Positions 6,031-41,797 of a stretch of 64,000 bases of DNA are shown here, piece after piece (position 1 is the first letter of the stretch; each line of letters starts with the position of its first letter). A model generated the notes under the pieces. The model was not told where the DNA came from and searched no databases. It was given only the letters and a program-made list of their open reading frames with translations. The stretch comes from Paramoeba atlantica. Its lineage: Eukaryota > Protista > Discosea. The position numbers were made by a program, and so were the translations under genes. The stretch is from positions 186,001 through 250,000 of the forward strand of contig CDRNVI010000070.1 of the NCBI GenBank assembly GCA_977017575.1. Reading direction: 5' to 3'.

Positions 6031-6525
6031 AAATATGTACGACTGATCCTACAAAGGCAGCGCAGATTTCAAGTTTGTTGTGTGGAACGCAACGCGTATT
6101 TTTCGCCGTATGCTCCCGAACCACCAGCAAGACACTACTGTCCCTGCGATTCATATTGATTGAGACAAGCTTCTAGAATGATATTTTCTCGGATTATTAT
6201 TATTGTTGAGGTTGCACATATCTACCGCTCTACTCTCGATTATTTAAAAAAAAGTGAAGAAAAACAGTGAAAAAATAGAAAGGAACACAGCAGAGGGGCT
6301 TCGGGTGAGGCCCAAAAAGAGATCACGCGAGATCTCTTATTTATTAAAGGCCTTGAAGGGGTAGAGTAATTTGTTTTTGAGATTATCTTTCTTACGACAG
6401 TAGTGACCGGGGAGTACCCTACTTTCTCCATACCATCTTTACGCTTTAAGAACCTCCCTCTGTCCCCTCTTAACACCACCTTTCACCTCCCTACCCTCTT
6501 CCCCACATCCCCCCCCACCACCACC

Positions 6526-7500
6526 ATGACCCTCCCCCCTCCACTCGATCCCATTATCCCCAACACCGTCGCCTCTTCGTACGCTTCGCACCCCTCCTCC
6601 CCCACCCCCGCACCCCACCCCGAGTCTCCCCCCCAGCTCCGTCTCGGGACCAAAATCATCCCCGCCCCCGGGGCCTCCGAGCTCACCAACCCCGACGGCA
6701 CCATCCTCTCCATCCACACCGAGTACACCCCGGAGGGCGCCCGTGTGGAGAAGCGAACCCTGCTGCGTCGTGTGCCCCGCACGGAGGTCCAAACCCCAAC
6801 GGCGCAGCGACGACAGAACACGTGGAAACCCTTTGGTCGCGCCACCGACGCGAATATGGAGAGTCTCACCTCCGTCCCCGCGAACCCCCCCGTGCTGGTG
6901 CTCCGGCAGGAGGGGAGGCGGGGAGCCGGGGGGACGGGAGACGCGGGGGGGAGTGGGGGGCGCATAGGGGAGGTGGGCGCCGGGGGGAGTGCGGAGCGTA
7001 TGACCTTACGAGCGTTGGATGAGCTCGAGGCCGCGTTCGCGCGGGAGGCGACGCGGGTGGAGCAGTTGAAGCGGATGGAGCAGAGTGGGGGAGGGGGGAG
7101 CAAGGAGAGTGGGGGAGGGAAAGGGGTGGGTCGAGGGGGGGATGGGGGGGAGGGCTCACCGTTGAGTGGTGCAAAGGCCGGGGTGTACCGTGCGCGAGGG
7201 AAGGAGGGGGCTACGATGCATGATAATGCGGAGGTGACGGCATTGCGGGTGTCGAATTTGAGCGAGGATACGAATGAGGAGGCACTGCGGTTGTTGTGTG
7301 CGAAAATTGGGCGGGTGCAACGGGTGTATGTTCCGATGGTGACGGAAAGGGATCCGAATACTGGGGTGGCGACGCAGAGGAATAAAGGATACGCATTTGT
7401 GACGTTTACAAAAGTGTCGGAGGCGGAGAAGGCGTTGGAGAAGTTGAACAAACATCCCTTCCAAGGAGCTTTGTTGTCGGTGACCTGGGGATCGAAATAG
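6526..7500 (+). CDS. EIF3G: Translation initiation factor eIF3 subunit G
   Basis: RRQNTWKPFG segment, then a C-terminal RRM (ALRVSNLSEDTNEEAL...KGYAFVTF...LSVTW). Confidence 0.85.
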   Translation: MTLPPPLDPIIPNTVASSYASHPSSPTPAPHPESPPQLRLGTKIIPAPGASELTNPDGTILSIHTEYTPEGARVEKRTLLRRVPRTEVQTPTAQRRQNTWKPFGRATDANMESLTSVPANPPVLVLRQEGRRGAGGTGDAGGSGGRIGEVGAGGSAERMTLRALDELEAAFAREATRVEQLKRMEQSGGGGSKESGGGKGVGRGGDGGEGSPLSGAKAGVYRARGKEGATMHDNAEVTALRVSNLSEDTNEEALRLLCAKIGRVQRVYVPMVTERDPNTGVATQRNKGYAFVTFTKVSEAEKALEKLNKHPFQGALLSVTWGSK

Positions 7501-28635: not shown

Positions 28636-30144
28636 ATGATAGGTGTGCTTTCGTTCTACACTAGTGTTCCGATTGATGACAGTTTTTCTAAAGGAAGATT
28701 CGTCGACAGCATAAGAGCCGATGATGGTACGGATCACAATTTTCAACAAAACAACGCTACAGTGGACCTTTCTGAGGTCAGCAAAAAGAACCCAGCACCC
28801 ATTCATGCAGAACCTCAAAGTGCGTGCGAAGATATTCAAGGTGCGATCACTCATGATAGGAATGAAGTATGGAAAAAGTGGCAGAAATATTTATCAGAAA
28901 ATCAGGAATTCCCTTATTTGAATATTGGGAACGAGCCTGAAGCGTATACATTTGTACCACTATCGGGGGAAAGTCTAACCATAGGTCGCGGAGGGCCAAC
29001 AATCCAGATCAAGAAATTTTTTAGAAATCATCGGAATGTTCCTAGAGCTGCGTGTACTGTGCAAACGACAACCATACCAACAAGTAGCTCTGAAGATTCA
29101 GAGGTCACTTTGCGCTTGAGATGCCTCAGAGGCTTCCTGCGGGTTCATGCGCATGCCTGTCCAAGTAATTATGAGGAAAATACTTTGATGGACTACGTTC
29201 AGCGTGGGTCCGAAACTGAGGCAAATGCACGACAATCCGTAAATTCTAGGCTCCGTAAATCTCCTCTTTCGAATCAGGTACATCGTTCCGCTACTTCCAT
29301 TCCGAATTCCAGCACTTCTTGCCCGGACACAACGCCCCGCATATCAAATAACGAAGCTTCTGAAATGCACACTAAGTTGTCAAAAATAAATAGCTTGGGA
29401 GATACCCAGGTGTTTAGCAATCCAAAACAGCGTCGTTCGACGAGCTATAAGATCATGCCTGGCTCAATTTTTCTTCTTAAGCCTGGAAATATTTTTACAT
29501 TTGGGAATAGCTCTATCGGGGCTGTTTTTCACTGTTACCATACAAGCGTTTTGTCACCCGATTTATTTTACAGACCCCGACTAGAGTTGATAGAAGAAAT
29601 TATTCGGAATCGTAAAGCATTACTTGGCAACGCGGGTGCGTTGAAAGAGAGTTTGTGTATATTATTAGAGTTTCTAGACAATCACACCCAAATCACTACC
29701 GGTGGCATGGAGGCTAGCTCCACGCAACTGACTCGCAATAGTCGTTTGCCATTGTCGGAACCTTCGCGCATATTAAGCGATTCTCCATTGCCGATACAAG
29801 TCGGATCATATCAATCTTGCGCTTCTCTACTCCGCGGAGTAAAATGTTCAACTAGTTTTTTTGGTGCTGTTCAGCATTTAGAACAACTTCTAGGCGTAGC
29901 GCAGAGACTAACGTTTGAAGAGAATCACTCAAATACACAGGAGGACAATGACAGAAGTGATACAATTGTAGAGCCTTTGTCAACAGTAATAGAAGAACCA
30001 ATTGTAGTTCCACACAGAGAGACACGGAATAGGACTGTTTCCTCCCATAAGTTCGCACACGAGAAACCGTGTACTACATTATCCGAAAATGCAGAATGGT
30101 ACAATGGCATTGCAGAGTCTCAGGTCGTAATATACGATCATTAA
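28636..30144 (+). CDS. Hypothetical protein with possible split FHA-like domain
   Basis: ~500-aa ORF. LTIGRGG and LLKPGNIFTFG resemble the first and last FHA strands, separated by an S/T-rich insert. The listed start at 28582 lies in element C. Confidence 0.6.
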   Translation: MIGVLSFYTSVPIDDSFSKGRFVDSIRADDGTDHNFQQNNATVDLSEVSKKNPAPIHAEPQSACEDIQGAITHDRNEVWKKWQKYLSENQEFPYLNIGNEPEAYTFVPLSGESLTIGRGGPTIQIKKFFRNHRNVPRAACTVQTTTIPTSSSEDSEVTLRLRCLRGFLRVHAHACPSNYEENTLMDYVQRGSETEANARQSVNSRLRKSPLSNQVHRSATSIPNSSTSCPDTTPRISNNEASEMHTKLSKINSLGDTQVFSNPKQRRSTSYKIMPGSIFLLKPGNIFTFGNSSIGAVFHCYHTSVLSPDLFYRPRLELIEEIIRNRKALLGNAGALKESLCILLEFLDNHTQITTGGMEASSTQLTRNSRLPLSEPSRILSDSPLPIQVGSYQSCASLLRGVKCSTSFFGAVQHLEQLLGVAQRLTFEENHSNTQEDNDRSDTIVEPLSTVIEEPIVVPHRETRNRTVSSHKFAHEKPCTTLSENAEWYNGIAESQVVIYDH

Positions 30145-30479
30145 AATACTGGGGTAATAGGCAGTATAAATGCAGGTTGAAAGTGAAATTTTTGAATATT
30201 TTTCGAATCGATTTTTTTTGAAAGAAATGTGCAGGAGAAATATTTTCAATAGGAATTCGAACTTCTTTGGACACATACTCCCTATATTTCGGACCTTTTT
30301 CACTTCCCAAATGCTCTGTACGAGGTGTACTACTTTGGCCTATTTGCTGCCAGCGGCCTCAATTTCGCTGTTAACGACGGAAAAAACGGTGTGCTGGCTG
30401 CGAAATCACTGTTTCGGGTTAAACGCCCCTTGTGAATGTTGTGTCCATCATGACAAGAGATCTTCAAGTGGGGGGGGAG

Positions 30480-30650
30480 TAAAACCTCGAGAAACCTCTC
30501 CCAAATTTTGGTGAAGTCTGAGTGCAGCCTCAAGAAACCTCGATGACACCTTTCGGAACGTTGATGAAACTTCGCGAAACCTCAGTGAAACCTCACGAAA
30601 TGTTGAGAACATGATAAATCCCTGGTCAAGGTTCGTGAAACCTCGTCACC
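30480..30650 (+). repeat. Degenerate short repeats of GAAACCTC
   Basis: Several (G)AAACCTC copies (gaaacctctc, gaaacctcga, gaaacctcag, gaaacctcac, gaaacctcgt). Confidence 0.5.
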
Positions 30651-31008
30651 CGCAGCCCCTCAAGTAAGTGACGACATCTAGAGAGCAATGTTTTCTAGAG
30701 GGAATCTAGAAGGAATCTAATAAAAAATCTAAACACTAAAATTTAGTAAATAGGGGGGATAGTAAGTGTAAAATCGAGTGTAAAAAAGTTGAAATACCAT
30801 TCGCCGCTAAAGCCGTTTACCAGACGTCTAAATGCAATAGAACAACCATTCAAGGTTGAAATTTATTAAAAGATTTAGCTTGGGGGTACGTTCGTTGATA
30901 TCTCAACGAAAATCCGGATTTTCGTTGAGTATTTTCGTCGAGCATATACATACTGTATGTATGTTGTCCATATAGTATCGATACGCTACCGAGCTCTACA
31001 AGTGTCTC

Positions 31009-31022
31009 ACGATAAAGATACA
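31009..31022 (+). ncRNA. 5' half of an interrupted spliced-leader (SL) exon-like sequence
   Basis: ACGATAAAGATACA. Joined to 35355 onward it gives GATACAGTTTCTGTAC, identical to nt 17-32 of the T. cruzi SL as I recall it. The canonical AACTAA 5' end is missing. Confidence 0.55.
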
Positions 31023-31359
31023 TTATCACAGACTTCATAAACACGCTTGTCACCGGTCCCAAGCCCGGCGTCGTCTTCTTAACAAGACGAAGTGTGAGGG
31101 TGAAGAATGTCATTGTACGATAAAGTACGATTTTTTAATATCTATTCATCTCTTCGTTTGTTGAACATACACACTATATAATCATTGGTTCCGATCCAAA
31201 GATAGGATATACATATTTTATTTACATGTTGACATTCCATGTGGGACCGAGCCTGGCACCACATTCGTGATTTTATTCCGGTTCGTTTTGGCCCTGATCG
31301 GGAAAAACATACCGTTCCGCGCCAAAATGCACTACCCCGAGGACCTTTGCGACTACGAC

Positions 31360-31390
31360 GATTATTATTATCATTATTATTATTATTATT
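31360..31390. repeat. (ATT)n microsatellite
   Basis: attattattatcattattattattattatt. Confidence 0.9.
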
Positions 31391-31779
31391 TGCCTCGAGG
31401 TCCTTCGGGACTGACGGTTGGCACTCCACCTCGAGGTTCTTCGGAACTGACGGTTGGTGGTTATACTTTGCCTCGAGGTCCTTCGGGACTGACGGTTGGC
31501 ACTTCACCTTGAGGTTCTTCGGAACTGACGGTTGATGGTTAAACTTTGCCTCGAGGTCCTTCGGGACTGACGGTTGGCACTTCACCTCGAGGTTCTTCGG
31601 AACTGACGGTTGGTGGTTATACTTTGCCTCGAGGTCCTTCGGGACTGACGGTTGGTGGTTACACTTTGCCTCGAGGTCCTTCGGGACTGACGGTTGGCAC
31701 TTCACCTCGAGGTTCTTTGGAACTGACGGTTGGTGGTTATACTTTGCCTCGAGATCCATCGGGACTGACGGTTGGCACA
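31390..31779. repeat. Tandem array 1: ten 36/42-bp units with CCTCGAGG palindrome and cUUCGg hairpin
   Basis: Units such as TTTGCCTCGAGGTCCTTCGGGACTGACGGTTGGCAC and TTCACCTCGAGGTTCTTCGGAACTGACGGTTGGTGGTTATAC, mostly alternating as a 78-bp dimer. Confidence 0.95.
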
Positions 31780-32226
31780 TCACTTAGAATCATCATTAAG
31801 GGTAGATTTCTTGTAGTCGTAAATTTAATGATTATTGTAGGCAAAGATTGCTGATCATCACACTGTACCACTGCTGTTTGTGTTGTTTTCCAGTGTACTG
31901 GAAGTAAAGAAAACGAAGCGGATAGAAAAAATGAAATTGTCTGTGTGACGCACCTTATACGACTCGCGCAGGCGGGTCAGTTTTGCACTGCTTTTTTTTC
32001 GCGGATTTCTAATGCAATGCCTTTACGGCTACGCATCTGTGTGACGTATCTAATAAAGGATGCTTAACACATTACACACCCCTTAGAGTTTTGTTTTACG
32101 TTTCAAAACCTAGAATGATGACAAGAAGGGGAGGAGGGAGTTGATCTGCGGTGCCAATGGGCATGCCTGTCACTGGGTTTGGTCCTGGTATAAAGGCCGT
32201 TCCTCGGTGAACCGTTCCGTCGTGTG

Positions 32227-33400
32227 GTGAGGTCTTTGAGACTTGCTTCGCGTTCCGGATTTTATGATCCGAGGCCCCTTATGGCTCTGTTTCCACTACA
32301 CTTGTAGTGAGAGGTCCTTTGGACTTGTTTAGTGTTCCGGATTTTATGATCCGAGGCCGTTTATGGCTCCATTTCCACTGCAATTGGTGTAGTGAGGTCC
32401 TTTGGACTTGTTTTATGTTCCGGATTTTATGATCCGATGCCTTTTATGGCTCTATTTCCACTACAATTGGTGTAGTGAGGTCCTTTGGACTTGTTTTGCG
32501 TTCCGGATTATATGATCCGATGCCTTTTATGGCTCTATTTCCACTACAATTGGTGTAGTGAGGTCCTTTGGACTTGTTTTGTGTTCCGGATTTTATGATC
32601 CGATGCCTTTTATGGCTCTATTTCCACTACAATTGGTGTAGTGAGGTCCTTTGGACTTGCTTTGCGTTCCGGATTATATGATCCGAGGCCCCTTATGGCT
32701 CTATTTCCACTACACTTGTAGTGAGGTCCTTTGGATTTGTTTTATGTTCCGGATTTTATGATCCGATGCCTTTTATGGCTCTATTTCCACTACAATTGGT
32801 GTAGTGAGGTCCTTTGGACTTGCTTTGCGTTCCGGATTATATGATGCGAGGCCCCTTATGGCTCTATTTCCACTACACTTGTAGTGAGAGGTCCTTTGGA
32901 CTTGTTTAGTGTTCCGGATTTTATGATCCGAGGCCTTTTATGGCTCTATTTCCACTACAATTGGTGTAGTGAGGTCCTTTGGACTTGTTTTATGTTCCGG
33001 ATTTTATGATCCGATGCCTTTTATGGCTCTATTTCCACTACAATTGGTGTAGTGAGGTCCTTTGGACTTGCTTTGCGTTCCGGATTATATGATGCGAGGC
33101 CCCTTATGGCTCTATTTCCACTACACTTGTAGTGAGAGGTCCTTTGGACTTGTTTAGTGTTCCGGATTTTATGATCCGAGGCCTTTTATGGCTCTATTTC
33201 CACTACAATTGGTGTAGTGAGGTCCTTTGGACTTGTTTTATGTTCCGGATTTTATGATCCGATGCCTTTTATGGCTCTATTTCCACTACAATTGGTGTAG
33301 TGAGGTCCTTTGGACTTGTTTTGCGTTCCGGATTTTATGATCTTTTAGGCCTTTTATGGCTCTGTTTCCGCTACAATTGGTGTAGTGAGGTTTGGACTTT
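32227..33400. repeat. Tandem array 2: ~14 units of 80-83 bp with a 248-bp higher-order repeat
   Basis: Consensus GAGGTCCTTTGGACTTGTTTTGCGTTCCGGATT(A/T)TATGATCCGATGCCTTTTATGGCTCTATTTCCACTACAATTGGTGTAGT. The three units from 32806 recur at 33054. Confidence 0.95.
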
Positions 33401-33925
33401 GTTTGCGCGATGAGGAGATTTCGACCGGAGTATCGGAGATTCAGATCCGATTTGATGTTGTTTTTTAATGTATTGTTTCAAGTCCTTTTTGAGGTGAAGG
33501 AAGAAGAGGAGGATTGGTGGCACCATCCATAGCTTGACTGATGTTTGTAGGATGAAGGTGCTCTGGAAATGTGTGAACATTTCCTACGATTGTCACAGAG
33601 AAAAAAAGAAGCTTTTGTTTCGAATTGTTACTTTTGAAAAAGTGAAGAAAAGGGGGTATAGAAATAAGGAAGTCTACTTTTCAAAATGTGATCGCCTCGC
33701 TGTTTGATCCAGCGCGCCGTCAAACGTACCGCAGTTTAGAGCTTTTAGTAGCGGTGGTCTTTGTGAATGTTAGTGTGCTTTACGAACGGTAGGTGACTCG
33801 GGATATGACGTCCGAAACTGATCTTCGAACGATGTGAGCAAGCATATGGTCCCGCTTTTGAGAGATAAGAAGAAAAAAGGAGAAAAAAGAAGAGCTATTC
33901 GGTGCCATGGCTTGCCAGGCGTACT

Positions 33926-34078
33926 GGGCTTGGTCCCGGTTCCAAGGTGCTTATGAAGTCTGTGATAATGAGGGTGTTGCTAATCTCTGGACAGTATGCT
34001 GCCCAGGGACACAGCAACTCCCCATTATCTCGGCGTAGTAAACACGCCTTGGCTTGCCTGGCACTGTGATCGCCGAGA
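33926..34078 (-). repeat. Internal complementary region: inverted copy of the element's right-end/left-end junction
   Basis: Minus strand reads ...GATTAGCAACACCCT-CA-TTATCACAGACTTCATAA... 33969-34078 mirrors 35245-35354 (one mismatch); 33926-33970 mirrors 31021-31066. Confidence 0.9.
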
Positions 34079-34469
34079 AAAAAAAACGTGATCATGCCGC
34101 TCTCGGCAAATGCCCAGCTCTCGCGATTCTCGTGGCACGAGAAGGAGAAGGCTGAACAGAAGTCGGAAGATCCGGTGCGAAGTACGCATGAATGATTTGG
34201 ATCTGCTTGAAAGAATTTGTATGGGGGGCCTCCCCGAGAAGATGTAAAGTCCCGTGAGGTGAAGCAAGATCTCGCCCTGGTCGCTTCTGCAAAAAAGAAA
34301 AAAAAATAAAGTGTTGGTAAATTACATCCCGCTATGGGAGACGAGTAAGCGAGTAAGTTGTAGGTTGTAAATATATTGCCAACGCCGCATTATTGGATGC
34401 ATTACGCGGGTCGCGTTGATAGAAAAGGAAAAAAATCACAAGGCTAATATTAGAAGTTTTCTTTAAGAT

Positions 34470-35035
34470 GCAGGATTTTAGATCTTTATGATGTTCGCAG
34501 CCTTATGACAGATTGTTTGTGACCTTTGTGATCCGTTATTCGAAATTTTTGTGACCTATTGTTTAGAATGTTAACGATCGTTTGTTTAGAATCTTGTTTT
34601 TATTTGTTGTTTTTTGTGGTATTTGTCTTTGCGACTCATTATAAAAAGAGCCTTTTAATCGGTTATTTGGGGATCTTTGTGACCCGTTGTTTGGGATCTT
34701 TGATATACGTTATTTGGGGTCTTTGTGACCCATTGTTCAGGAGCTTTTTGATCGGTTGTTGAGGATTGGTTGTATGGGGATCTTTGTGATCTGTTTTTTT
34801 GTGATCTTTTCGACCCCTTACTTAGGATATTTGTGATCGTTTGTTTGGTATCTATGAAGTCCTTATGACTCATTGCACGGGATCTTTGTAATCGGATGTG
34901 TATATTACCTGATTGGTTTGTTTGTTTGTTATCTTTGTGATCGGTTTACTTGAAATCTTAATGACCCATTATTTGTTATCTCGTGTTTGGGATCTTTGTG
35001 ACCCACCGTTTGTGGCCTTCGTGATCTTTGTGATC
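34470..35035 (+). repeat. Degenerate T/G-rich repeats of GATCTTTGTGA(C/T)C
   Basis: Exact or one-mismatch copies near 34520, 34673, 34718, 34782, 34880, 34930, 34990 and 35022. Confidence 0.7.
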
Positions 35036-35352
35036 AGTGCTAAAAAAAAAGAAATTCTTAAAAAAAAGAGCTTATTAAACGTGCGGGTACAGCACATACT
35101 TGCACACCCTGGTTCCGTATCCCAGCCTGCTTGACGCACGTCGAAAGACGTGTTGCCGGGGAGATCACTCGGATACGGAAACGGGCCCCTTAAGTGGGAA
35201 GCATTCTGGGCTGTGAAATGACTCGGGAGAAATATTTTTTTTTCTCTCGGCGATCACAGTGCCAGGCAAGCCAAGGCGTGTTTACTACGCCGAGATAATG
35301 GGGAGTTGCTGTGTCCCTGGGCAGCATACTGTCCAGGGATTAGCAACACCCT

Positions 35353-35375
35353 CAGTTTCTGTACCTTGTTGGTAC
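35353..35375 (+). ncRNA. 3' half of an interrupted SL exon-like sequence plus splice donor
   Basis: CAGTTTCTGTACCTTGTTG|GTAC versus the conserved kinetoplastid CAGTTTCTGTACT(T/A)TATTG|GTA. GTACC-TTGTT-GGTAC forms the donor-spanning hairpin. Confidence 0.65.
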
Positions 35376-36357
35376 TTTTTTTCCTAGCTCATCTTTTCTC
35401 TCCCGGAAACGGGCATATTTTTACAATGTCAATGCCTGTTTCCGGATGGCGCTAGGAGAGGAACTGTCCCTCTTGTCGCAAAGTAGGGGTGCGCCTCCCT
35501 TCCCTCATCTCCCAGCTCCCCGCTCGGAACACGGTTCCGAGTCCCCATGCGCTGCAGGACCCTACTACGGGACCACGCGGCGTGCCTTCACTATCCGGCG
35601 ACACCGGTACTTCTGCGCGTAGGAGGCTTCCATATACCGGAAGTCTCCCACACGGCGAGCAAACACGTTGTATGCGTGTTCTAGAGGATGTTCTATGCAC
35701 CTCTCTTGCTCACCAGCCGTGGCGGATTCTGTGGGACCCCGATGCCTATGATGCATCATGAACCATGACCCCATTTGCCAGCATGCATCCATGGCCCTGA
35801 CCATGTTGTATCATGAACCATGGAAGTCATTTGTAGCATGTACGATGGGAATATCATCCGCGTCCGACAAATCCGTATATCTTTCCTGGCGCACTGCGCT
35901 TACGAAACATCTCGGGACTTCTTATCCCGATGAGGCCGTCTCTTTTCGCTTTCCTGGGGAGGATATCCCGCGCTTTTCCCTGTGTTGCCTCGGAAGGCGA
36001 AAAGGTCCAGCAGGGAGCGTTGATTGCGCTTACCCCTTCTCGACCTAATTATCTCTACAGGTACTGCCCTGTATGAACAAACAACCTTTTGTCAACCTGG
36101 TGTGCCACAATTTGACACCTAGAAAAGGGAGATTCCACCAAAAGTGACAGATAACTAGGGGGGGGGTAACGTGTGACAAATAACCATGGGGTTTACAGTA
36201 CTTGCGAATTTGTATATCCATTTGTATATCCATTTGTATATTATGTCGTTCACGTTGTATATTGTTTGTGTATTATATCGTCTATGAAAGAGTTTTCTTG
36301 AAATCCACATCAGACTTAACTTATTTCTAGCCACAGGTGTAGTTTTTCTTGAATTTC

Positions 36358-36789
36358 ATGCGAAAAGCTTTGTGCCTAGCCTCTCAAAGCGTTTTGATCC
36401 CGCGTAAACTCGCCATAAAATACGGTATTTGTGTCTCTTGGGATAGCGTGAGGCGCCAAGGCTGTGTAAAGGAAATAGAAACAGGTCTTGAATTTCTTGC
36501 GAAGGAAGATGAACTGTTTTTGTTGGACCACACTCCGGGCGGTGTCCGGTACGCTGGTCGGGTTCCAGCACTTGCAACAGACAGATACCTTAATGTGAGT
36601 GAGGAAGTCGAATTTCGGACACTTCGAACAAGAATAGGCCTCATTGCAATTCAGATTACAGGTCCGGGTGGGACTTCGCTTCGAGGAGAGCGCTATCCTC
36701 CTAAATATGGTGGACCTGAGAATCAAACGAATGAAGAGTTTAATGAATTTGCCGAGAGTTCAATCAGTTCAGAACCTGTGGAACGATAG
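36358..36789 (+). CDS. Cold-shock-domain protein (RBP16-like fold), probably mitochondrial
   Basis: GICVSWDSVRRQGCV and YLNVSEEVEF...IAIQITGPGG align with the CSD strands of RBP16 (GKVISW..., LTVGQEVEF...AENVTSPGG). The RNP aromatic residues have diverged. Confidence 0.6.
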   Translation: MRKALCLASQSVLIPRKLAIKYGICVSWDSVRRQGCVKEIETGLEFLAKEDELFLLDHTPGGVRYAGRVPALATDRYLNVSEEVEFRTLRTRIGLIAIQITGPGGTSLRGERYPPKYGGPENQTNEEFNEFAESSISSEPVER

Positions 36790-37064
36790 AACGTCGAGTT
36801 TTCTGCGCACCTTCCGATCCTTGCCATTTTTCATGAGTTCTAAAGGATGTCTATCGAAACGGAGAGAATACTCTGCATGCGCAGCTGTCCTCCCCACTTT
36901 ACAGAGTTTGCTTCAGCAGTTATTTTTGTAACCAGTTTTGACGTTTACTACAGAAAACATTTTGCTGTGATTTTTTGCAGTTTCGTTGAGATAATAGTAT
37001 ATAATTTTCTTTTTTAATGTCTTCGTTAAACTCGGTGGCTGTTTTCAACTTAGAAATCACTCAT

Positions 37065-37212
37065 GCTGTGCCCCCTCGACCCGCCCCTGTCCCCCCTGCC
37101 CCCCCTGGACACCCCCTTCGACCTCACCCCTGGGCCCCCCCTGCCACTCCCCCCTGCCCCCCCCTGGACCACCCTCTGCCCCCCCGCCCTGGACCCGCCC
37201 CTCTGGACCCCA
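37065..37212 (+). repeat. C-rich low-complexity tract (G-quadruplex-prone on the minus strand)
   Basis: Repeated CCCCCTG/CCCCTG runs. Confidence 0.8.
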
Positions 37213-37397
37213 CATTTTTTTTAATTTTCTTTTCAGTTTTGGACCACCGGAGACCCCTTTTATATTTTTTTCTATAGTATATTACTGTGTTCCTCTTTAT
37301 ATTTTCACTGCTTTTGTTCACTTTTTTTCAATAATCGAGGGTAGAGCGGTAGTTATACAACCACCGCAATAAGCAGCTATAGTGTAGAGCCATAGTT

Positions 37398-38237
37398 ATG
37401 ATTTCTCGAGTGGGTTCTAAATTATTTTCCTTTATTAGTTCCAATATTGGTCGAAGCCATAGAGATTATTCTGAAATGCACGACGTGAAAAATGTATTCT
37501 GGGAAACTTCACTACCAGAGCTCTTGATTGATGACGTGTTCAATTTAACGCTTTTTTCAATTGTAAAAGCTACAGGAGCTGAATCATTTGATACGGCAGA
37601 GTGCAGTGACCATACCCTAGAGATTGCTGCCATGTTGTACTCTATCACAGGAATTTTTATGAGCGTCAAAGTTCTCACGAGCTACCTTTCTAGAGCGACA
37701 TCTCACTTTGGCTCCTTGGATAAAGCATTAGATGCCTACACATTTATTCCTAATGCACCAGCATTACAAAGCATTATTAAAGACTCGTCAAGTGATCCTA
37801 CTTTTAACATCTCGTTGACCCGAGAATGGTTCCGGAAAAAAAGACAAGCGCGGGGAATGGATGCGAATTCGCACCCTAAACAAGAGCGAGTCTTTCGTCC
37901 AGTCTTTCAGTCAAAACTTTTGCACTGTTTAGATGTATGCTGTACATTTCCGGGCAGCGGTGTTTTTCTTTATCCAGTTGAATCCAGCGTTTTAATGACG
38001 TACGGAGGTGCGTTCGCTGGTCCATATAGCAACACTGTTTTGCGTCCGATCGACCTTTCTAGCATACGTAGAGAAATCGAACATGGAAATATAGATACCA
38101 TATCCAAATTACTTCTTTGCATTTTGCGGCTAGTTGCCAACTGTGTCTTCTTCAATGCACCTGAAAGTGATTTTCCCTGCACAGCACGCTCATTTTTGAA
38201 ACACTGCTACATCACAATTTTTGATGCATCACAATAA
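37398..38237 (+). CDS. Bromodomain-containing protein
   Basis: VFLYPV...PYSNTVLRPIDLSSIRREI...LVANCVFFNAPES, with the acetyl-lysine-binding Asn (FN) kept. Confidence 0.8.
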   Translation: MISRVGSKLFSFISSNIGRSHRDYSEMHDVKNVFWETSLPELLIDDVFNLTLFSIVKATGAESFDTAECSDHTLEIAAMLYSITGIFMSVKVLTSYLSRATSHFGSLDKALDAYTFIPNAPALQSIIKDSSSDPTFNISLTREWFRKKRQARGMDANSHPKQERVFRPVFQSKLLHCLDVCCTFPGSGVFLYPVESSVLMTYGGAFAGPYSNTVLRPIDLSSIRREIEHGNIDTISKLLLCILRLVANCVFFNAPESDFPCTARSFLKHCYITIFDASQ

Positions 38238-38909
38238 AAAAAAATAGAGCGGATGGTAAAATTCACCAAAACAATTTTCGATAAATGAAGGTTGAGGACT
38301 GGTCTCGAGGGATCAAGCGGAACCTTTAGCTACTACGCGTTACTAATGATACTCTTCTAATTACTGCTACATGTACAACCCCGTTCGTGATTTTTGGGAC
38401 AAACGTCTTGAGAGCGTCATGCGAGCTTCTTGACTGATTTGTTTTGCATAATACGTGACTCTGACAAGAGAACCACGAATAACTAGTCAGAATGCGCTGT
38501 CTTTGGCTCCATAGAAATGAGATTTGTTTTAACAAAAAATTATTAGTTTATGATATTTCGGCAAAAAAATATTTCTAGGTAGTACCTAGATCGCAAATCT
38601 CTGTCCCTGGTACAGATGTCCATAATCCTGTATCTAAGATACATAATCGGATAATCCTCCGCTCATGATAGGACTAGGAGAAAGTATTTCTTCCGCGGAG
38701 ATGTTGACTCGAGTAAACTCCGAGCCGTTCTTTAGCTTTATCCAGCGATCTGGTCGGAGCGTGGTTTCTAGACTTCAAAAAGCTTCCGTATTAAGTTCAC
38801 CCTAAACTCTACCACCAAATCTTCATTAAATCACGTGTTATTCTTGCGCAAAGTTAAGTTTCGTGTTGGATTTGTGCATATACATGAGTTATGTGTTAGA
38901 TTTATCTTT

Positions 38910-39020
38910 GTCCTATACCCAAATCAAATTACTGTCCCCCCCCTATTTAGTGTTGAGTGAAATTCCGAAAAATTCAACACTAAATAGGGGGGGGACAGTA
39001 ATTTGATTTGGGTGTAGGAC
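38910..39020. repeat. 111-bp palindrome (47-bp arms, one mismatch, 17-bp loop) containing a 67-bp TA-bounded CTGTC...GACAG unit
   Basis: 38910-38956 is the reverse complement of 38974-39020. Confidence 0.95.
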
Positions 39021-39564
39021 TCTTGAGGGGTGACTCCTATCCAGGCGCTTCTAGGCGCTTTTAGGCGCTTCCAGTGAACTTCTGTGGAGTTCGGACTTGG
39101 TAATTTGAGGATTAGCAACGTAAACCCCCCTATGTGGGGACATGGGGGGTACACTTTTTTATTTTCTAAAATTTTGTCCAAGGAAGTGGCAGATTGGACC
39201 GCGGCTATCGTTCGGTCCCGGTAATAAGGCATTTTGCACTGCGTCAACAAGAGATGAATGTCGTAAATTGTTGTTGTTTTTGTTGGTAACAAGAGCGCCC
39301 GCAATACCCTCATGCAAGCGCCGCAAGTACCACTCCGGCTCTCGGGATCCGCCCGAGTACGGGGACGCAAGGCTCTCCTAGGTCGCTTCACTAGCGTGCG
39401 TGTGTCTGTGCGTGTGAGTCAAGCCAGTTGGCTCCGAAGAGCTCTGGCTTCCTACTTCACGCATAGGTCGCGCTACCGGTTCTCCACGCGAAGCGTGATC
39501 TTTTAACACGAGAGAGTCGAAACCCTCAATCATACAAGAAGACCGGACTTTCCTCATGAGTGGT

Positions 39565-39730
39565 CAGGCGGGCGGCGCATGGGTGAAGGAAGGTGCGAAG
39601 AGGGCGTGGCAGGGGGGCGAATTGAGTGGTCAGGAGGATGGCCAAGAGTGGGGGCGAAGAGGGCAGGCCAAGACGGCAGGCGAGGAGGGCGGCCAGGGGG
39701 CGCCGAGGAGAGCGGCGAAGAGCGATATGT
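39565..39730 (+). repeat. G/A-rich low-complexity tract
   Basis: Repeated GGGCG/GAGGGC/CAGGGGG words. Confidence 0.65.
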
Positions 39731-40911
39731 GGGAAGCCTCACCAGTGACAATGAACACTCCATAGTTAGCCTACCATGTGTCAAAAAGATAAAAAACGGC
39801 TCCGTTGGTCCAAAATTGAAAACAAAAATCAAACAATGGGGGGTCGCCACACCTGAGGATGACCTCCCTAAAATATTCTAAAATATGTTATGCGGTCGAA
39901 ACCATGATAAAGTCTTGTAACTTGGCTAAACATTTCCAACAACATGATTACCACATCCTCTAACTGAAGCTAATAAGATTAAGAAAAAGTAAAAAGAAAA
40001 ATTAAGACAAAGGTCCTTGGCGCTTCCAGGCGCTCCCACCCAGAGTCACCCCTCTAGATAGGGGGGGTAAGAAATCTCCTCCCCTCAAAAGAAAGCGCTC
40101 CGCTTCGCGGCGTATTGTTTTCAAAACCATGATTGTAGTATTTTTTTCACTCGGTTGGGGATACATCTTTATGAACGCTGTGGGACATTTGTATAAAAGC
40201 CCTGTGGGGGGACATATTTTACAAACTGAACAAAAACTGCCTTGATTCTTCTCTTGGATTGCTGCTCTGTACAAACCACGCGCTCTGTACTTATCACGCG
40301 CAACGAAGACACTTTTTCATGGTTGCGAATTGTGTACATTCCAGAAAAGTGCACATGAAGACTTCAGCCTTGCGATGTGGGTCTCTTTAACCGCTTGAAG
40401 CCAAAACTACTATACTACCTAATCTTGGCCTTACTGAAATACTGTCAGACTCAATACACTGAGGGAAAGCTAATCGGTGACACTCGGTCGATCGGAGCAA
40501 AAATAGCAAAGCACAGCTTCTTGACAGTATTATCAAAACGTACGCCCACCTTAATGATAATCGGCAGAGGTATGCTAATGTTCAAGCGCGGAGTAAGGTC
40601 GGAATTTCGCCGTAAAGTCTAAATAAGCCAGAAAACATCCTTGAAGCGATTCGCCGGGCGAGCGAACTGTTTACAGTGATACCGGTTCTTGATGCAGCAG
40701 AAGAAAATGAAGAGGACATGATTTCTCCTGAAAGTGCTGATCACCCCTTTGTTTTGTAAAAGCCTTCGTAAATTTATTTACCACCAGTAGTTATTTTTTT
40801 AGATAAATTTGTTGTTAGAAAGAGCGCTTCTCTCGACGCATTTTCATTACTTACTCTATGTTTACTTACCGGAACAGAACTAAAACTTCTGAACGGATGT
40901 AAAAAGTCGAT

Positions 40912-41594
40912 GTAAAAATCAGTATCCTTGGGAAGCTTTCTCATTGATTTTAATAAATATAAATAAATTTATAAATTTTCGTTTTTTCTATAAATTATAT
41001 TTATAAAAATCAATGAGAGGGAGAGTAAACAATCACAAATAACAAGCAAAGATAAGGAAAAAAAGTTTTTGAAAAAAAATTAATAGCCGCTTCGCGGCGC
41101 CTACAACCCCGTTCACGAAAAATGGGACCATCCTTGTAAGAGCTGCGAGACTTGTTTTTAGATAATGTTTTTTCAGGCATACTCAGATTACCACAGAGAA
41201 CACCGGAGATACGTTTTTATTTTGTATTTTATCCGCTTTTCGTCTAATTAATGAAAAGATTTTTAAAAATTATAAAATAAAAAGTTCCACATTTTAACAT
41301 TTCTCGATTTTTCAGAAGACTTCTCCAGGTTTTATTTATTCGATCAACGTCCTATGAGTTGTAGCGATAGTGAAGAACTATCAAGCAGGGTGACTCTTTC
41401 GGTAAAAATCAGTATCCTTGGGAAGCGTTCTCATTGATTTTTTAAAAATAATTATAAATTTTCATTTTAATTTTTGCTATAAGTTATATTTATAAAAATC
41501 AATGAGAGGGAGAGTAAACAATCACAAATAACAAGCAAACATAAGAAAAAAACGTTATGGTGGAAAAAAATTAAGCGCCGCTTCGCCGCACCTA
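40912..41594 (+). repeat. Two ~190-bp AT-rich direct repeats (40912-41104, 41402-41594)
   Basis: Shared GTAAAAATCAGTATCCTTGGGAAGC.TTCTCATTGATTTT and ATAAAAATCAATGAGAGGGAGAGTAAACAATCACAAATAACAAGCAAA. Each ends in a GCCGCTTCGC hairpin. Confidence 0.9.
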
Positions 41595-41610
41595 TACGCA
41601 CCAAACCCCA

Positions 41611-41664
41611 AATTCAACACTAAATAGGGGGGTTGAGCACTCAATAGTAAATAGGGGGGGACAG
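41611..41664. mobile_element. Isolated right terminus of the CTGTCCCCCCCCTATTTA family
   Basis: AATTCAACACTAAATAGGGGGG...TAGTAAATAGGGGGGGACAG followed by TA. Same sequence as the 38932-38998 ends. Confidence 0.55.
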
Positions 41665-41797
41665 TACATCCATTTAATACACCTGTCTAGTTCTGTCATG
41701 TACCGAAGTAAGCGATCCCGAATATCTCGTAATACATGTCATGTAATTATGATTTAGGTACACTCCTACATTTTTGCACATTCAATATCTTATTTTG

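Follow-up and report, generated by a model that had tools for sequence, protein, structure and literature searches.

Little is understood of how retrotransposons that use a tyrosine recombinase (YR) choose their targets and rebuild their ends. The internal complementary region (ICR), which in DIRS-1 of Dictyostelium is an inverted copy of both outer ends, is said to be a template from which the ends are restored, an idea that has been proposed and partly tested for DIRS-1; we know of no experimental tests of an ICR in any other element. The ICR of DIRS-1 is essential, and integration of DIRS elements is thought to use a short oligonucleotide common to the junction and the target (PMC7192593). 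A different group of retroelements, SLACS, CZAR, CRE1 and CRE2, occupies a single position in the spliced leader (SL), in a single orientation. Elements of the SLACS/CZAR/CRE type have a restriction-like endonuclease (REL), poly(A) tails and target duplications of tens of base pairs, and insert near SL nt 11-12. TATE is associated with telomere repeats, which would be a precedent for site preference in the family described here. HDV-like ribozymes are known from R2 and L1Tc. Non-LTR elements of Schistosoma bear variants of the twister ribozyme (PMC8501958).

Here we describe a segment of 4,334 bp, CA counted at both ends, on the plus strand at 31021..35354 of the window, that is, of the whole 64,000-nucleotide stretch of DNA that was analysed. 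With a probability of roughly 0.78, we read it as a non-autonomous deletion derivative of a DIRS-order, VIPER-like family of YR retrotransposons in a kinetoplastid-type protist, propagated by the cycle proposed below. Whether this is also an undescribed YR lineage, one that takes the SL as its integration site, is cut by a twister ribozyme 18 nt inside its end and rebuilds the lost letters and the junction from an inverted internal copy, we hold to be an even question. In the literature searched, we found no description of an SL-targeting YR retroelement combined with a twister ribozyme and no report of VIPER or TATE with an SL insertion or a ribozyme, and a search with the exact string of the SL 3' part returned no paper. 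The family would be the first SL-sequence-specific element other than non-LTR retrotransposons.

The element starts with CATTATCACAGAC at 31021 and ends with AGCAACACCCTCA at 35354. Its excision together with one CA leaves ACGATAAAGATA-CA-GTTTCTGTACCTTGTTG, followed by GTAC, so that one of the two terminal CAs is the target's. On the plus strand, the interrupted SL copy thus comprises a 5' part (ACGATAAAGATA, 31009..31020), shorter than the full SL, and a 3' part (GTTTCTGTACCTTGTTG, 35355..35371). The complete 38-nt SL followed by GTA is found in tandem arrays with a period of ~2.56 kb on contigs C97 and C107. The ends can also be placed without reference to the SL: one copy with SL flanks (C30) and one with non-SL flanks (C19) share 98.8% identity over precisely the length of the element, with divergent sequence beyond it, and the limits of this identity fix the ends independently. 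The window copy has no poly(A) tail and no duplication beyond the CA, and the ORFs of its interior gave no match to an enzyme family above threshold. Self-comparison returned inverted matches only between the ends and the ICR; split direct repeats and inverted terminal repeats are absent.

The ICR lies at 33926..34086, where the minus strand reads as the last ~120 nt of the element, CA and its first 46 nt, the sequence expected of a circle junction. Its right arm matches the right end over 123 nt at 97% (33964-34086 versus 35237-35359), and the match of its left arm is 96% over 24 nt and 87% when lengthened to 46 nt. The corresponding terminal arms, each with its inverted repeat in the ICR, occupy 31021..31066 (left, 46 nt, plus strand) and 35237..35354 (right, plus strand). 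The ICR junction contains no SL letters. The same arrangement, with the outer ends placed side by side and inverted inside the element (~120 + 46 nt), recurs in autonomous copies and in the related family L066, which has the same ICR layout. The preliminary description of this DNA had proposed sharp segment ends, restoration of the SL upon deletion of the segment and one CA, an internal copy of the circle junction, and the absence of a poly(A) tail, a long target duplication, an enzyme ORF and inverted termini, and all of these proposals are borne out by the comparisons above.

The interior of the element, read on the plus strand, is built of tandem repeats. Repeats with a 78-bp period (31351..31788) are also found in autonomous copies, an 83-bp tandem repeat in ~14 copies (32222..33391) occupies the space of the autonomous copies' ORFs, and degenerate 23-bp tandem repeats lie at 34502..35038. 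A long 3'-terminal hairpin (35300..35352) is kept in L066 with two compensatory pair changes. What the window copy has retained are cis parts, namely the left 1.2 kb with the ribozyme candidate, the ICR and the right 250 bp.

Relatives of 6.9 kb elsewhere in the genome have the same ends and the same internal junction and encode, in this order, an ORF in gag position, a YR and an RT/RNase H. Domain searches of ORF1 gave no match. The YR ORF, which encodes 293 aa, has weak Pfam matches to SAM-like and Phage_integrase domains; its AlphaFold model (pLDDT 94.6) finds Cre as the best Foldseek match (E 1e-8), and across 50 homologs R156, H250 and Y284 are invariant, with K183, R253 and H254 conserved in at least 90%. 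This catalytic R-K-H-R-H/W-Y set is borne by the YR of the autonomous relatives, not by the window copy, which would have to borrow their proteins. The RT/RNase H ORF matches Pfam RVT_1 and RVT_3, its family profile matches the RTs of caulimoviruses, Ty3 and HIV, and its nearest Atlas clusters are unnamed euglenozoan RT_RNaseH proteins. Longer copies with RT/RNase H and a YR, for which the preliminary description had advised a search, do then exist, and neither an REL endonuclease nor a poly(A) end was found in them.

The family shows all the marks of the DIRS order, an LTR-retroelement-like RT with RNase H, a YR, an internal copy of the two joined outer ends and no target duplication beyond the junction oligonucleotide. 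With DIRS-1 it shares YR and RT/RNase H, an inverted ICR made from both outer ends and the lack of a long target duplication. It differs from DIRS-1 in its gag-YR-RT order, in its defined host target of ~30 nt, in the ribozyme candidate at its 5' end and in the position of the ICR, which precedes the ORFs, at ~1.2 kb from the left end, rather than adjoining the right repeat. Moreover, the DIRS1-like group has inverted terminal repeats, which are missing here, and a methyltransferase domain, for which the four long ORFs of L031 gave no Pfam match. VIPER and TATE, found in the same host group, share with the family the order of gag-like, YR and RT/RNase H genes, the lack of a target duplication and the presence of short non-coding derivatives (PMC12278014, PMC6681497), SIRE being such a derivative of VIPER. 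Their ends, however, are split direct repeats (A1 ... B1-A2-B2), whereas the present family has the inverted junction only, and their YR and RT frames overlap (PMC12278014), whereas ours are three separate frames; an overlap of the VIPER type was considered for the autonomous copies and rejected on this ground.

The target is the SL sequence wherever it is present as DNA, mostly in dispersed copies. The SL 3' part directly follows 14 of 17 right ends, and GTTTATGG follows two (one duplicated event). On the left, 14 junctions agree with the SL 5' part when up to 3 mismatches are allowed. Distinct flanks define at least 10 independent contexts of insertion, in all of which the CA and the orientation are the same, and this CA is all that the target, both flanks and the junction have in common. 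It corresponds to SL nt 20-21 or 21-22, the ambiguity arising because A-runs blur the 5' end of the SL in genomic copies. The genome contains 911 uninterrupted SL 24-mers, which represent empty sites; the targets are mostly among ~900 dispersed DNA copies that head other retroelements, and the assembled SL RNA gene arrays showed no copy of the element. One copy (C19; a duplicated event) is off target, at a non-SL site with only the core CAGTTT in common with the SL. Hence the site-specific recombination into the SL inferred in the preliminary description is supported by the shared CA and orientation in at least 10 contexts, this copy being the exception. Likewise, the SL was correctly named as the target sequence, and the organism's own arrays on C97 and C107 do carry it, but the sites used are mostly SL copies at the heads of retroelements, not SL RNA genes. 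In contrast to SLACS/CZAR/CRE, the present element relies on a YR, lacks a tail, leaves no more than CA and occupies SL nt 20-22.

The window locus has only 12 nt of SL ahead of the CA, and its right flank is similar to a SINE-like repeat with a shortened SL head; the body of this repeat (35372..35490, plus strand) is 79-81% similar to copies on other contigs, some of them interrupted and some not. An SL RNA gene was rejected as the target of this copy, the flank being different from the array unit. The locus recurs with more than 1 kb of both flanks at ~99% on C44, and its right flank (~1.5 kb, 99.7%) recurs on C237; because these flanks are common, the copies on C70 (the window), C44 and C237 were counted as one insertion event. 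The copies on C4 and C9 also have flanks in common. No empty paralogous site of the window locus was found, the right-flank pattern occurring at C70 and C44 only. For the flanks on C65, C51, C60, C83 and C87, and in part for C45 and C54, only pattern matches were recorded, and the sequence was not read.

The RNA of the element appears to be cut free by a twister ribozyme, self-cleavage being inferred from the sequence without assay data. Element nt 14-84 (31034..31104, plus strand) match the complete twister-P1 core (RF03160), including P1, P2, P4 and the two pseudoknot motifs; P3 is lacking, and a P5 hairpin is found in addition. The core motifs (a UAA site, CCGGUCCCAAGCCCGG and GAGGG, with P1, P2 and P4) are all present in two subfamilies, which give full-length matches at the same element position (E 7.8e-5 and 5.4e-4), and the minimum free energy fold recovers P1, P2, P4 and P5. 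Cleavage is predicted between 31038 (U) and 31039 (A), element nt 18/19; one autonomous copy has A in place of the U preceding the site. The scores of 33-39 bits are below the Rfam gathering score of 67.2, with P3 missing and an insertion of 18 nt. The match was obtained only at an E-value threshold, and an Rfam search of the window at the gathering threshold gave none. Within the family no covariation is available for this stretch, which is nearly invariant while adjoining sequence diverges. Across the genome, 27 such matches were listed, three of them at the heads of this family, versus 0 in 14 control genomes. In ribozyme-processed retrotransposons, as in our model, a 5' self-cleaving ribozyme would free the RNA from a read-through transcript. 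The ribozyme-processed non-LTR elements, however, cut at or before the first nucleotide, whereas the cut predicted here, in a YR element, lies 18 nt from its start, and the letters that it would remove are present in the ICR.

These parts suggest the following cycle. An element in sense orientation would be read through by polycistronic transcription, and the twister would cleave the RNA after nt 18, freeing its 5' end. The 18 nt lost through the predicted cut could be restored from the left arm of the ICR (46 nt), and such an RNA 5' end would explain why the ends need to be present in a second, internal copy. Once the RNA is reverse-transcribed, the inverted ICR could act as an intramolecular template that restores the 18 lost nucleotides and joins the right end to the left. 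The YR would then recombine the joined ends with the SL at the common CA, leaving CA on both sides; the position and orientation of this step are observed, and its chemistry is inferred. Mobility, ribozyme cleavage and circle formation are likewise inferred, not demonstrated, and circle-mediated recombination is an inference from anatomy. No circle, RNA 5' end or insertion polymorphism has been observed. The only public runs holding this DNA are available as short Logan contigs, none of which reaches across 31021, 35354 or the ICR, and neither an empty-site joint nor a circle joint is present; the assembly is neither supported nor refuted by them.

The scattered interrupted SL copies might have another origin, in which true SL RNA genes are the element's sole insertion sites and the interrupted SL RNA, its splice donor intact, is trans-spliced as a giant leader onto LINE and SINE RNAs, whose RTs then scatter the composite. 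The readable right flanks do run on as 5' UTR-like sequence of SL-headed elements. Also, the SL 5' part beside the element is 5'-shortened more often than in uninterrupted copies (SL upstream of ACGAT is present in one of five readable element-adjoining contexts versus 84% of uninterrupted copies), as would be expected of incomplete reverse transcription. This route nevertheless seems very unlikely, because the duplicated copy at a non-SL site, with only the CAGTTT core, indicates direct integration of DNA, the assembled SL arrays lack any copy, and a leader of 4-7 kb would have to be copied completely every time. The SL-free junction that the ICR defines also speaks against it. That junction counts likewise against the idea that the SL halves belong to the element or its RNA, for example through trans-splicing, and mark no target site, which we find scarcely credible even though other retroelements here bear 5' DNA copies of the SL and the element itself contains, at nt 97-108, a sequence close to the SL 5' part (ACGATAAAGTAC). 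A trans-spliced SL should be whole and 5', but here its 5' part precedes the element and its 3' part follows it; flanks diverge immediately after the SL letters; and the ends are the same in the copy with non-SL flanks. The split halves, the SL-free junction and this last copy led us to reject SL letters carried by the element.

It is unlikely, too, that the family is an extinct relic, segmental duplication alone having spread the window copy and its look-alikes, and the ribozyme-like stretch and ICR being without present function. The 99% likeness of the C70, C44 and C237 flanks and the shared flanks of C4 and C9 are what duplication would produce, several autonomous copies have broken ORFs (the RT frame is broken in two of the three read), and the YR lacks an ATG. 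Against this, at least 10 differing flank contexts remain after removal of duplicates, copies from different contexts agree at 95-99%, the three frames of L031 are all open, and conservation is higher in the ribozyme stretch than around it. If the reading of an undescribed YR lineage is true, its combination of SL targeting, a twister cut and rebuilding from the ICR would provide a worked, testable example of the purpose of DIRS-type ICRs. For such tests the family provides a defined target of ~30 nt, a crossover point known to the dinucleotide, an off-target site that arose naturally and a small Cre-like enzyme suited to expression and assay. It also indicates that SL DNA copies dispersed by other retroelements can serve a second class of element as landing pads.

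Two features of the autonomous proteins count against our preferred reading. In all three autonomous copies read, the YR frame begins immediately behind a stop codon, and the conserved N-terminal domain is not preceded by an ATG; a cis-intron and an ATG supplied by the SL were considered as sources of the start and rejected, as neither yields an in-frame ATG. In the RT, motif C is YxDN, not YxDD.

The SL-splitting element with an internal junction is a real feature of the window. Direct reading of the sequence gives a left boundary of ...ACGATAAAGATA / CA / TTATCACAGAC..., with the CA at 31021-31022, and a right boundary of ...AGCAACACCCT / CA / GTTTCTGTACCTTGTTG-GTAC..., with the CA at 35353-35354. 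Between them lies an internal complementary region (ICR, 33926-34086), whose minus strand consists of the element's last ~120 nt, one CA and the first ~46 nt. A repeat finder placed the ICR right arm at 123 nt (97%) and its left-arm core at 24 nt (96%) and detected no inverted repeats in the element besides these arms; the element therefore lacks inverted termini. The interior is built of tandem repeats of 78, 83 and 23 bp, and its ORFs match no enzyme family, the two sub-threshold hits both falling on repeat-encoded peptide. The boundaries, the internal junction and the absence of inverted termini and of an enzyme ORF were thus all correctly read in the preliminary description. A 3'-terminal hairpin (35300-35352) is retained, with two compensatory changes, in L066, a related tyrosine recombinase (YR) retroelement family; a role in priming or recognition is possible but is speculation only.

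Many copies of the element are present in the same genome (45.7 Mb, 248 contigs). Longer versions occur at five places, where the inverted junction comes directly after the left 1.2 kb; the right end stands ~5.5 kb further in three and ~10.5 kb further in two (C45, C54). In one autonomous copy, L031 (contig C30; 6,942 bp), a left arm (nt 1-46), 78-bp repeats (nt 425-789) and an ICR (nt 1185-1348) precede ORF1 (351 codons), a YR frame (293 codons) and a reverse transcriptase (RT)/RNase H frame (587 codons), in that order, and then a right arm (nt 6822-6942). The window copy shares only three parts with L031, namely nt 1-1176 (~83-89%), the ICR (~86%) and the last 250 nt (~83%), so it is a non-autonomous derivative retaining the presumed cis-acting parts. 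Some copies are not independent: at ~99%, the element recurs on C44:783450-789624 together with over 1 kb of each flank (relative to window 29000-37400), the right flank on C237 matches that of the window over ~1.5 kb at 99.7%, and the copies on C4 and C9 have flanks in common. These likenesses are segmental duplications or uncollapsed haplotypes. Directly right of L031 (L031:7903-8440) is a tandem repeat of 442-bp period, each unit of which joins the element's last ~40 nt to the SL 3' part and then to ~400 nt from the start of the SL-headed element downstream.

Insertion is specific in both position and orientation. Pattern searches of the whole genome, with ICR copies left out, yielded 17 right ends, 14 of which are followed by GTTTCTGTACCTTG with at most three mismatches. 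Two others (C19, C43) are followed by GTTTATGG and, because they share both flanks, were counted as one duplicated event; the flank of the last, on C65, was not read. On the other side, the SL 5' part precedes fourteen left junctions (at most three mismatches), variants of it precede two more, and ...AACTAT precedes the C19/C43 junction. When evident duplicates (C70/C44/C237; C4/C9) are removed, at least 10 different flank contexts remain, all sharing one CA as insertion point and one orientation with respect to the SL. With 911 occurrences of the SL 24-mer in 45.7 Mb, a random insertion would hit this position and orientation with a probability of ~1e-5 per event. L031, which has SL flanks, and L032, an autonomous copy on C19 with non-SL flanks, show 98.8% identity between the first element base and CA + GTTT and are unrelated beyond that stretch; since identity stops there, the ends are fixed without reference to the SL. 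The off-target site of L032 has CAGTTTnTG in common with the SL. Read directly, the SL has a perfect inverted repeat around the crossover, TACAG-TTT-CTGTA. Such repeats are the kind of site bound by YR dimers, but this is an observation and not a test.

It is unsettled why the SL 5' part adjoining the element is often shortened to ACGATAAAGATA or less. Short SL heads of SINE-like targets, together with microhomology joining at A-runs, may explain it; among uninterrupted copies with the 13-mer ACGATAAAGATA, 411 of 488 (84%) extend upstream into SL sequence. In the window, the target looks like a SINE-like repeat whose SL head is shortened; a relative without the interruption (L057) lies on contig C2. 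To the right of L031, the flank leads into an ORF containing CxxC pairs. The majority of SL copies are dispersed and, in a sample, typically have an A-run before them and a pyrimidine-rich leader and ATG after them, an arrangement that fits R2/CRE-like LINEs and SINE-like elements which were copied from trans-spliced RNA and bear the SL at their 5' ends. Tandem SL RNA gene arrays are present on C97 and C107 (period ~2.56 kb), where each repeat has a 38-nt SL followed by GTA, and also on C11 and C74. No element copies were found on these four contigs, which is not a significant deficit, given that only ~4% of SL copies are in arrays and 17 ends were counted. On C74 the SL copies are unevenly spaced (2.7, 7.3 and 7.3 kb), which could hide insertions of other elements.

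The proteins of the autonomous copies are those of a YR retroelement. The YR of L031 has weak Pfam matches to SAM-like and catalytic integrase domains, and an exhaustive profile search returned 214 relatives; an alignment of 50 of these shows no variation at R156, H250 and Y284 and conservation of at least 90% at K183, R253 and H254. Its AlphaFold model (pLDDT 94.6) matches Cre-DNA complexes best (E 1e-8, TM 0.65), followed by XerH, lambda Int and Tn1549 integrase. In all three autonomous copies read (L031, L032, L033), the YR frame begins directly after a stop (L031:4240-4290), with a pyrimidine tract and AG upstream, resembling a trans-splice acceptor, and no ATG ahead of the conserved N-terminal domain; homologs begin with M ~20 residues earlier. 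The RT frame of L031 matches RVT_1 and an RNase H family; as a profile with seven homologs it matches caulimovirus polyprotein, Ty3 RT and HIV RT, and its neighbours in a language-model search are euglenozoan RT_RNaseH clusters. Motif C has the form YxDN in place of YxDD in eight of eight homologs, down to 21% identity (L031:5509-7266; P0001-P0006, P0020), and it aligns with the DD found in solved RTs. The variant seems to be a lineage trait and not decay, although RT activity has not been shown, and the frame is broken in L032 and L033. ORF1, which has a basic tail at its end, has no domain match and is named gag-like for its position only.

A search of the element against all of Rfam, at an E-value threshold, matched nt 14-84 (window 31034-31104) to the entire type-P1 twister ribozyme model, and the match recurs at the same position in L031 (E-values 7.8e-5 and 5.4e-4). 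Present in the alignments are P1 (UUCA/UGAA) and P2, the UAA cleavage site, the GAGGG motif and CCGGUCCCAAGCCCGG, which is invariant; P3 is missing, and the place where P5 would be expected is taken by an additional hairpin. Both stems are optional in twisters. The score of 33-36 bits, versus a gathering score of 67, is low because of these two departures. A minimum free energy fold recovers P1, P2, P4 and P5 (z = -2.1). The two subfamilies hardly differ in this stretch, and the sequence right after it diverges. The predicted cut falls between nt 18 (U) and nt 19 (A); nt 18 is A in one autonomous copy. Searched as a whole, the genome has at least 27 twister-P1 matches that are full-length but sub-threshold. 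Three (C19, C30, C23) stand at heads of this family and most lie outside it; none are listed for 14 control genomes. Several element families here may thus use twister heads. In Schistosoma, twister variants have been reported at the 5' ends of non-LTR elements (PMC8501958). Directly downstream of the ribozyme, both subfamilies have a near-copy of the SL 5' part (window 31117-31128, ACGATAAAGTAC; autonomous subfamily, L031 element nt ~100-115, ACGATAAGGTAC), which might be a mimic of the target's left half or chance.

The anatomy, coding capacity, exact and oriented target position and ribozyme-core conservation are observed; the route connecting them, from read-through to strand exchange, is inferred in the absence of RNA, cDNA, circle or polymorphism data. 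Across the window (1-64000), 19 of 19 long ORFs not overlapping a longer + strand ORF are on the + strand, and two shorter minus-strand ORFs lie inside the long + strand ones. The whole window is one directional, same-strand gene cluster with the element in its sense orientation, in a gene-poor gap of ~11 kb (30144-41774) that also contains other repeats. From this orientation we infer that a read-through transcript would span the element in sense, and twister cleavage would free an RNA beginning at nt 19. On minus-strand cDNA, the ICR would read as plus-sense right end, CA and left end, so it could pair with the 3' terminus of the cDNA, which is complementary to nt 19-46. Elongation from there would run through nt 18-1 and on into the right end, restoring the missing letters and providing a terminal overlap that permits closure to a circle. 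By strand exchange, the YR would finally recombine the junction CCCT-CA-TTAT with the SL GATA-CA-GTTT. Such ICR templating is the Cappello model for DIRS-1, whose ICR has been shown to be essential (PMC7192593). The ribozyme-plus-ICR logic is directly testable. With coding YR-type members found, insertion confined to one CA and the organism's own SL in its arrays containing the target, each as anticipated, the overall interpretation of a non-autonomous YR-type element recombining into the SL is supported, its circle route by inference only.

The SL-targeting family meets the defining features of the DIRS order but fails those of the DIRS1 group, having neither inverted terminal repeats nor a methyltransferase and carrying its ICR upstream of the ORFs. 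With VIPER/TATE it has host group and gene order in common, but it lacks the split direct repeats and overlapping frames described for them (PMC12278014, PMC6681497). The known SL-specific elements SLACS, CZAR and CRE are non-LTR elements and differ in ends and position. In the incomplete literature searched, we found no paper that connects YR elements with twister or with the SL. L066, from an ENA assembly (YR 52%, RT 41% identical), lacks its left end, which the contig start cuts off, and carries the same inverted-junction layout (L066:1383-1508 and 6481-6606). It has different ends (…CCCTACCA / TTGTGTTTATTG…) and a right flank other than SL; this layout without an SL flank implies that the architecture is older than the SL specificity.
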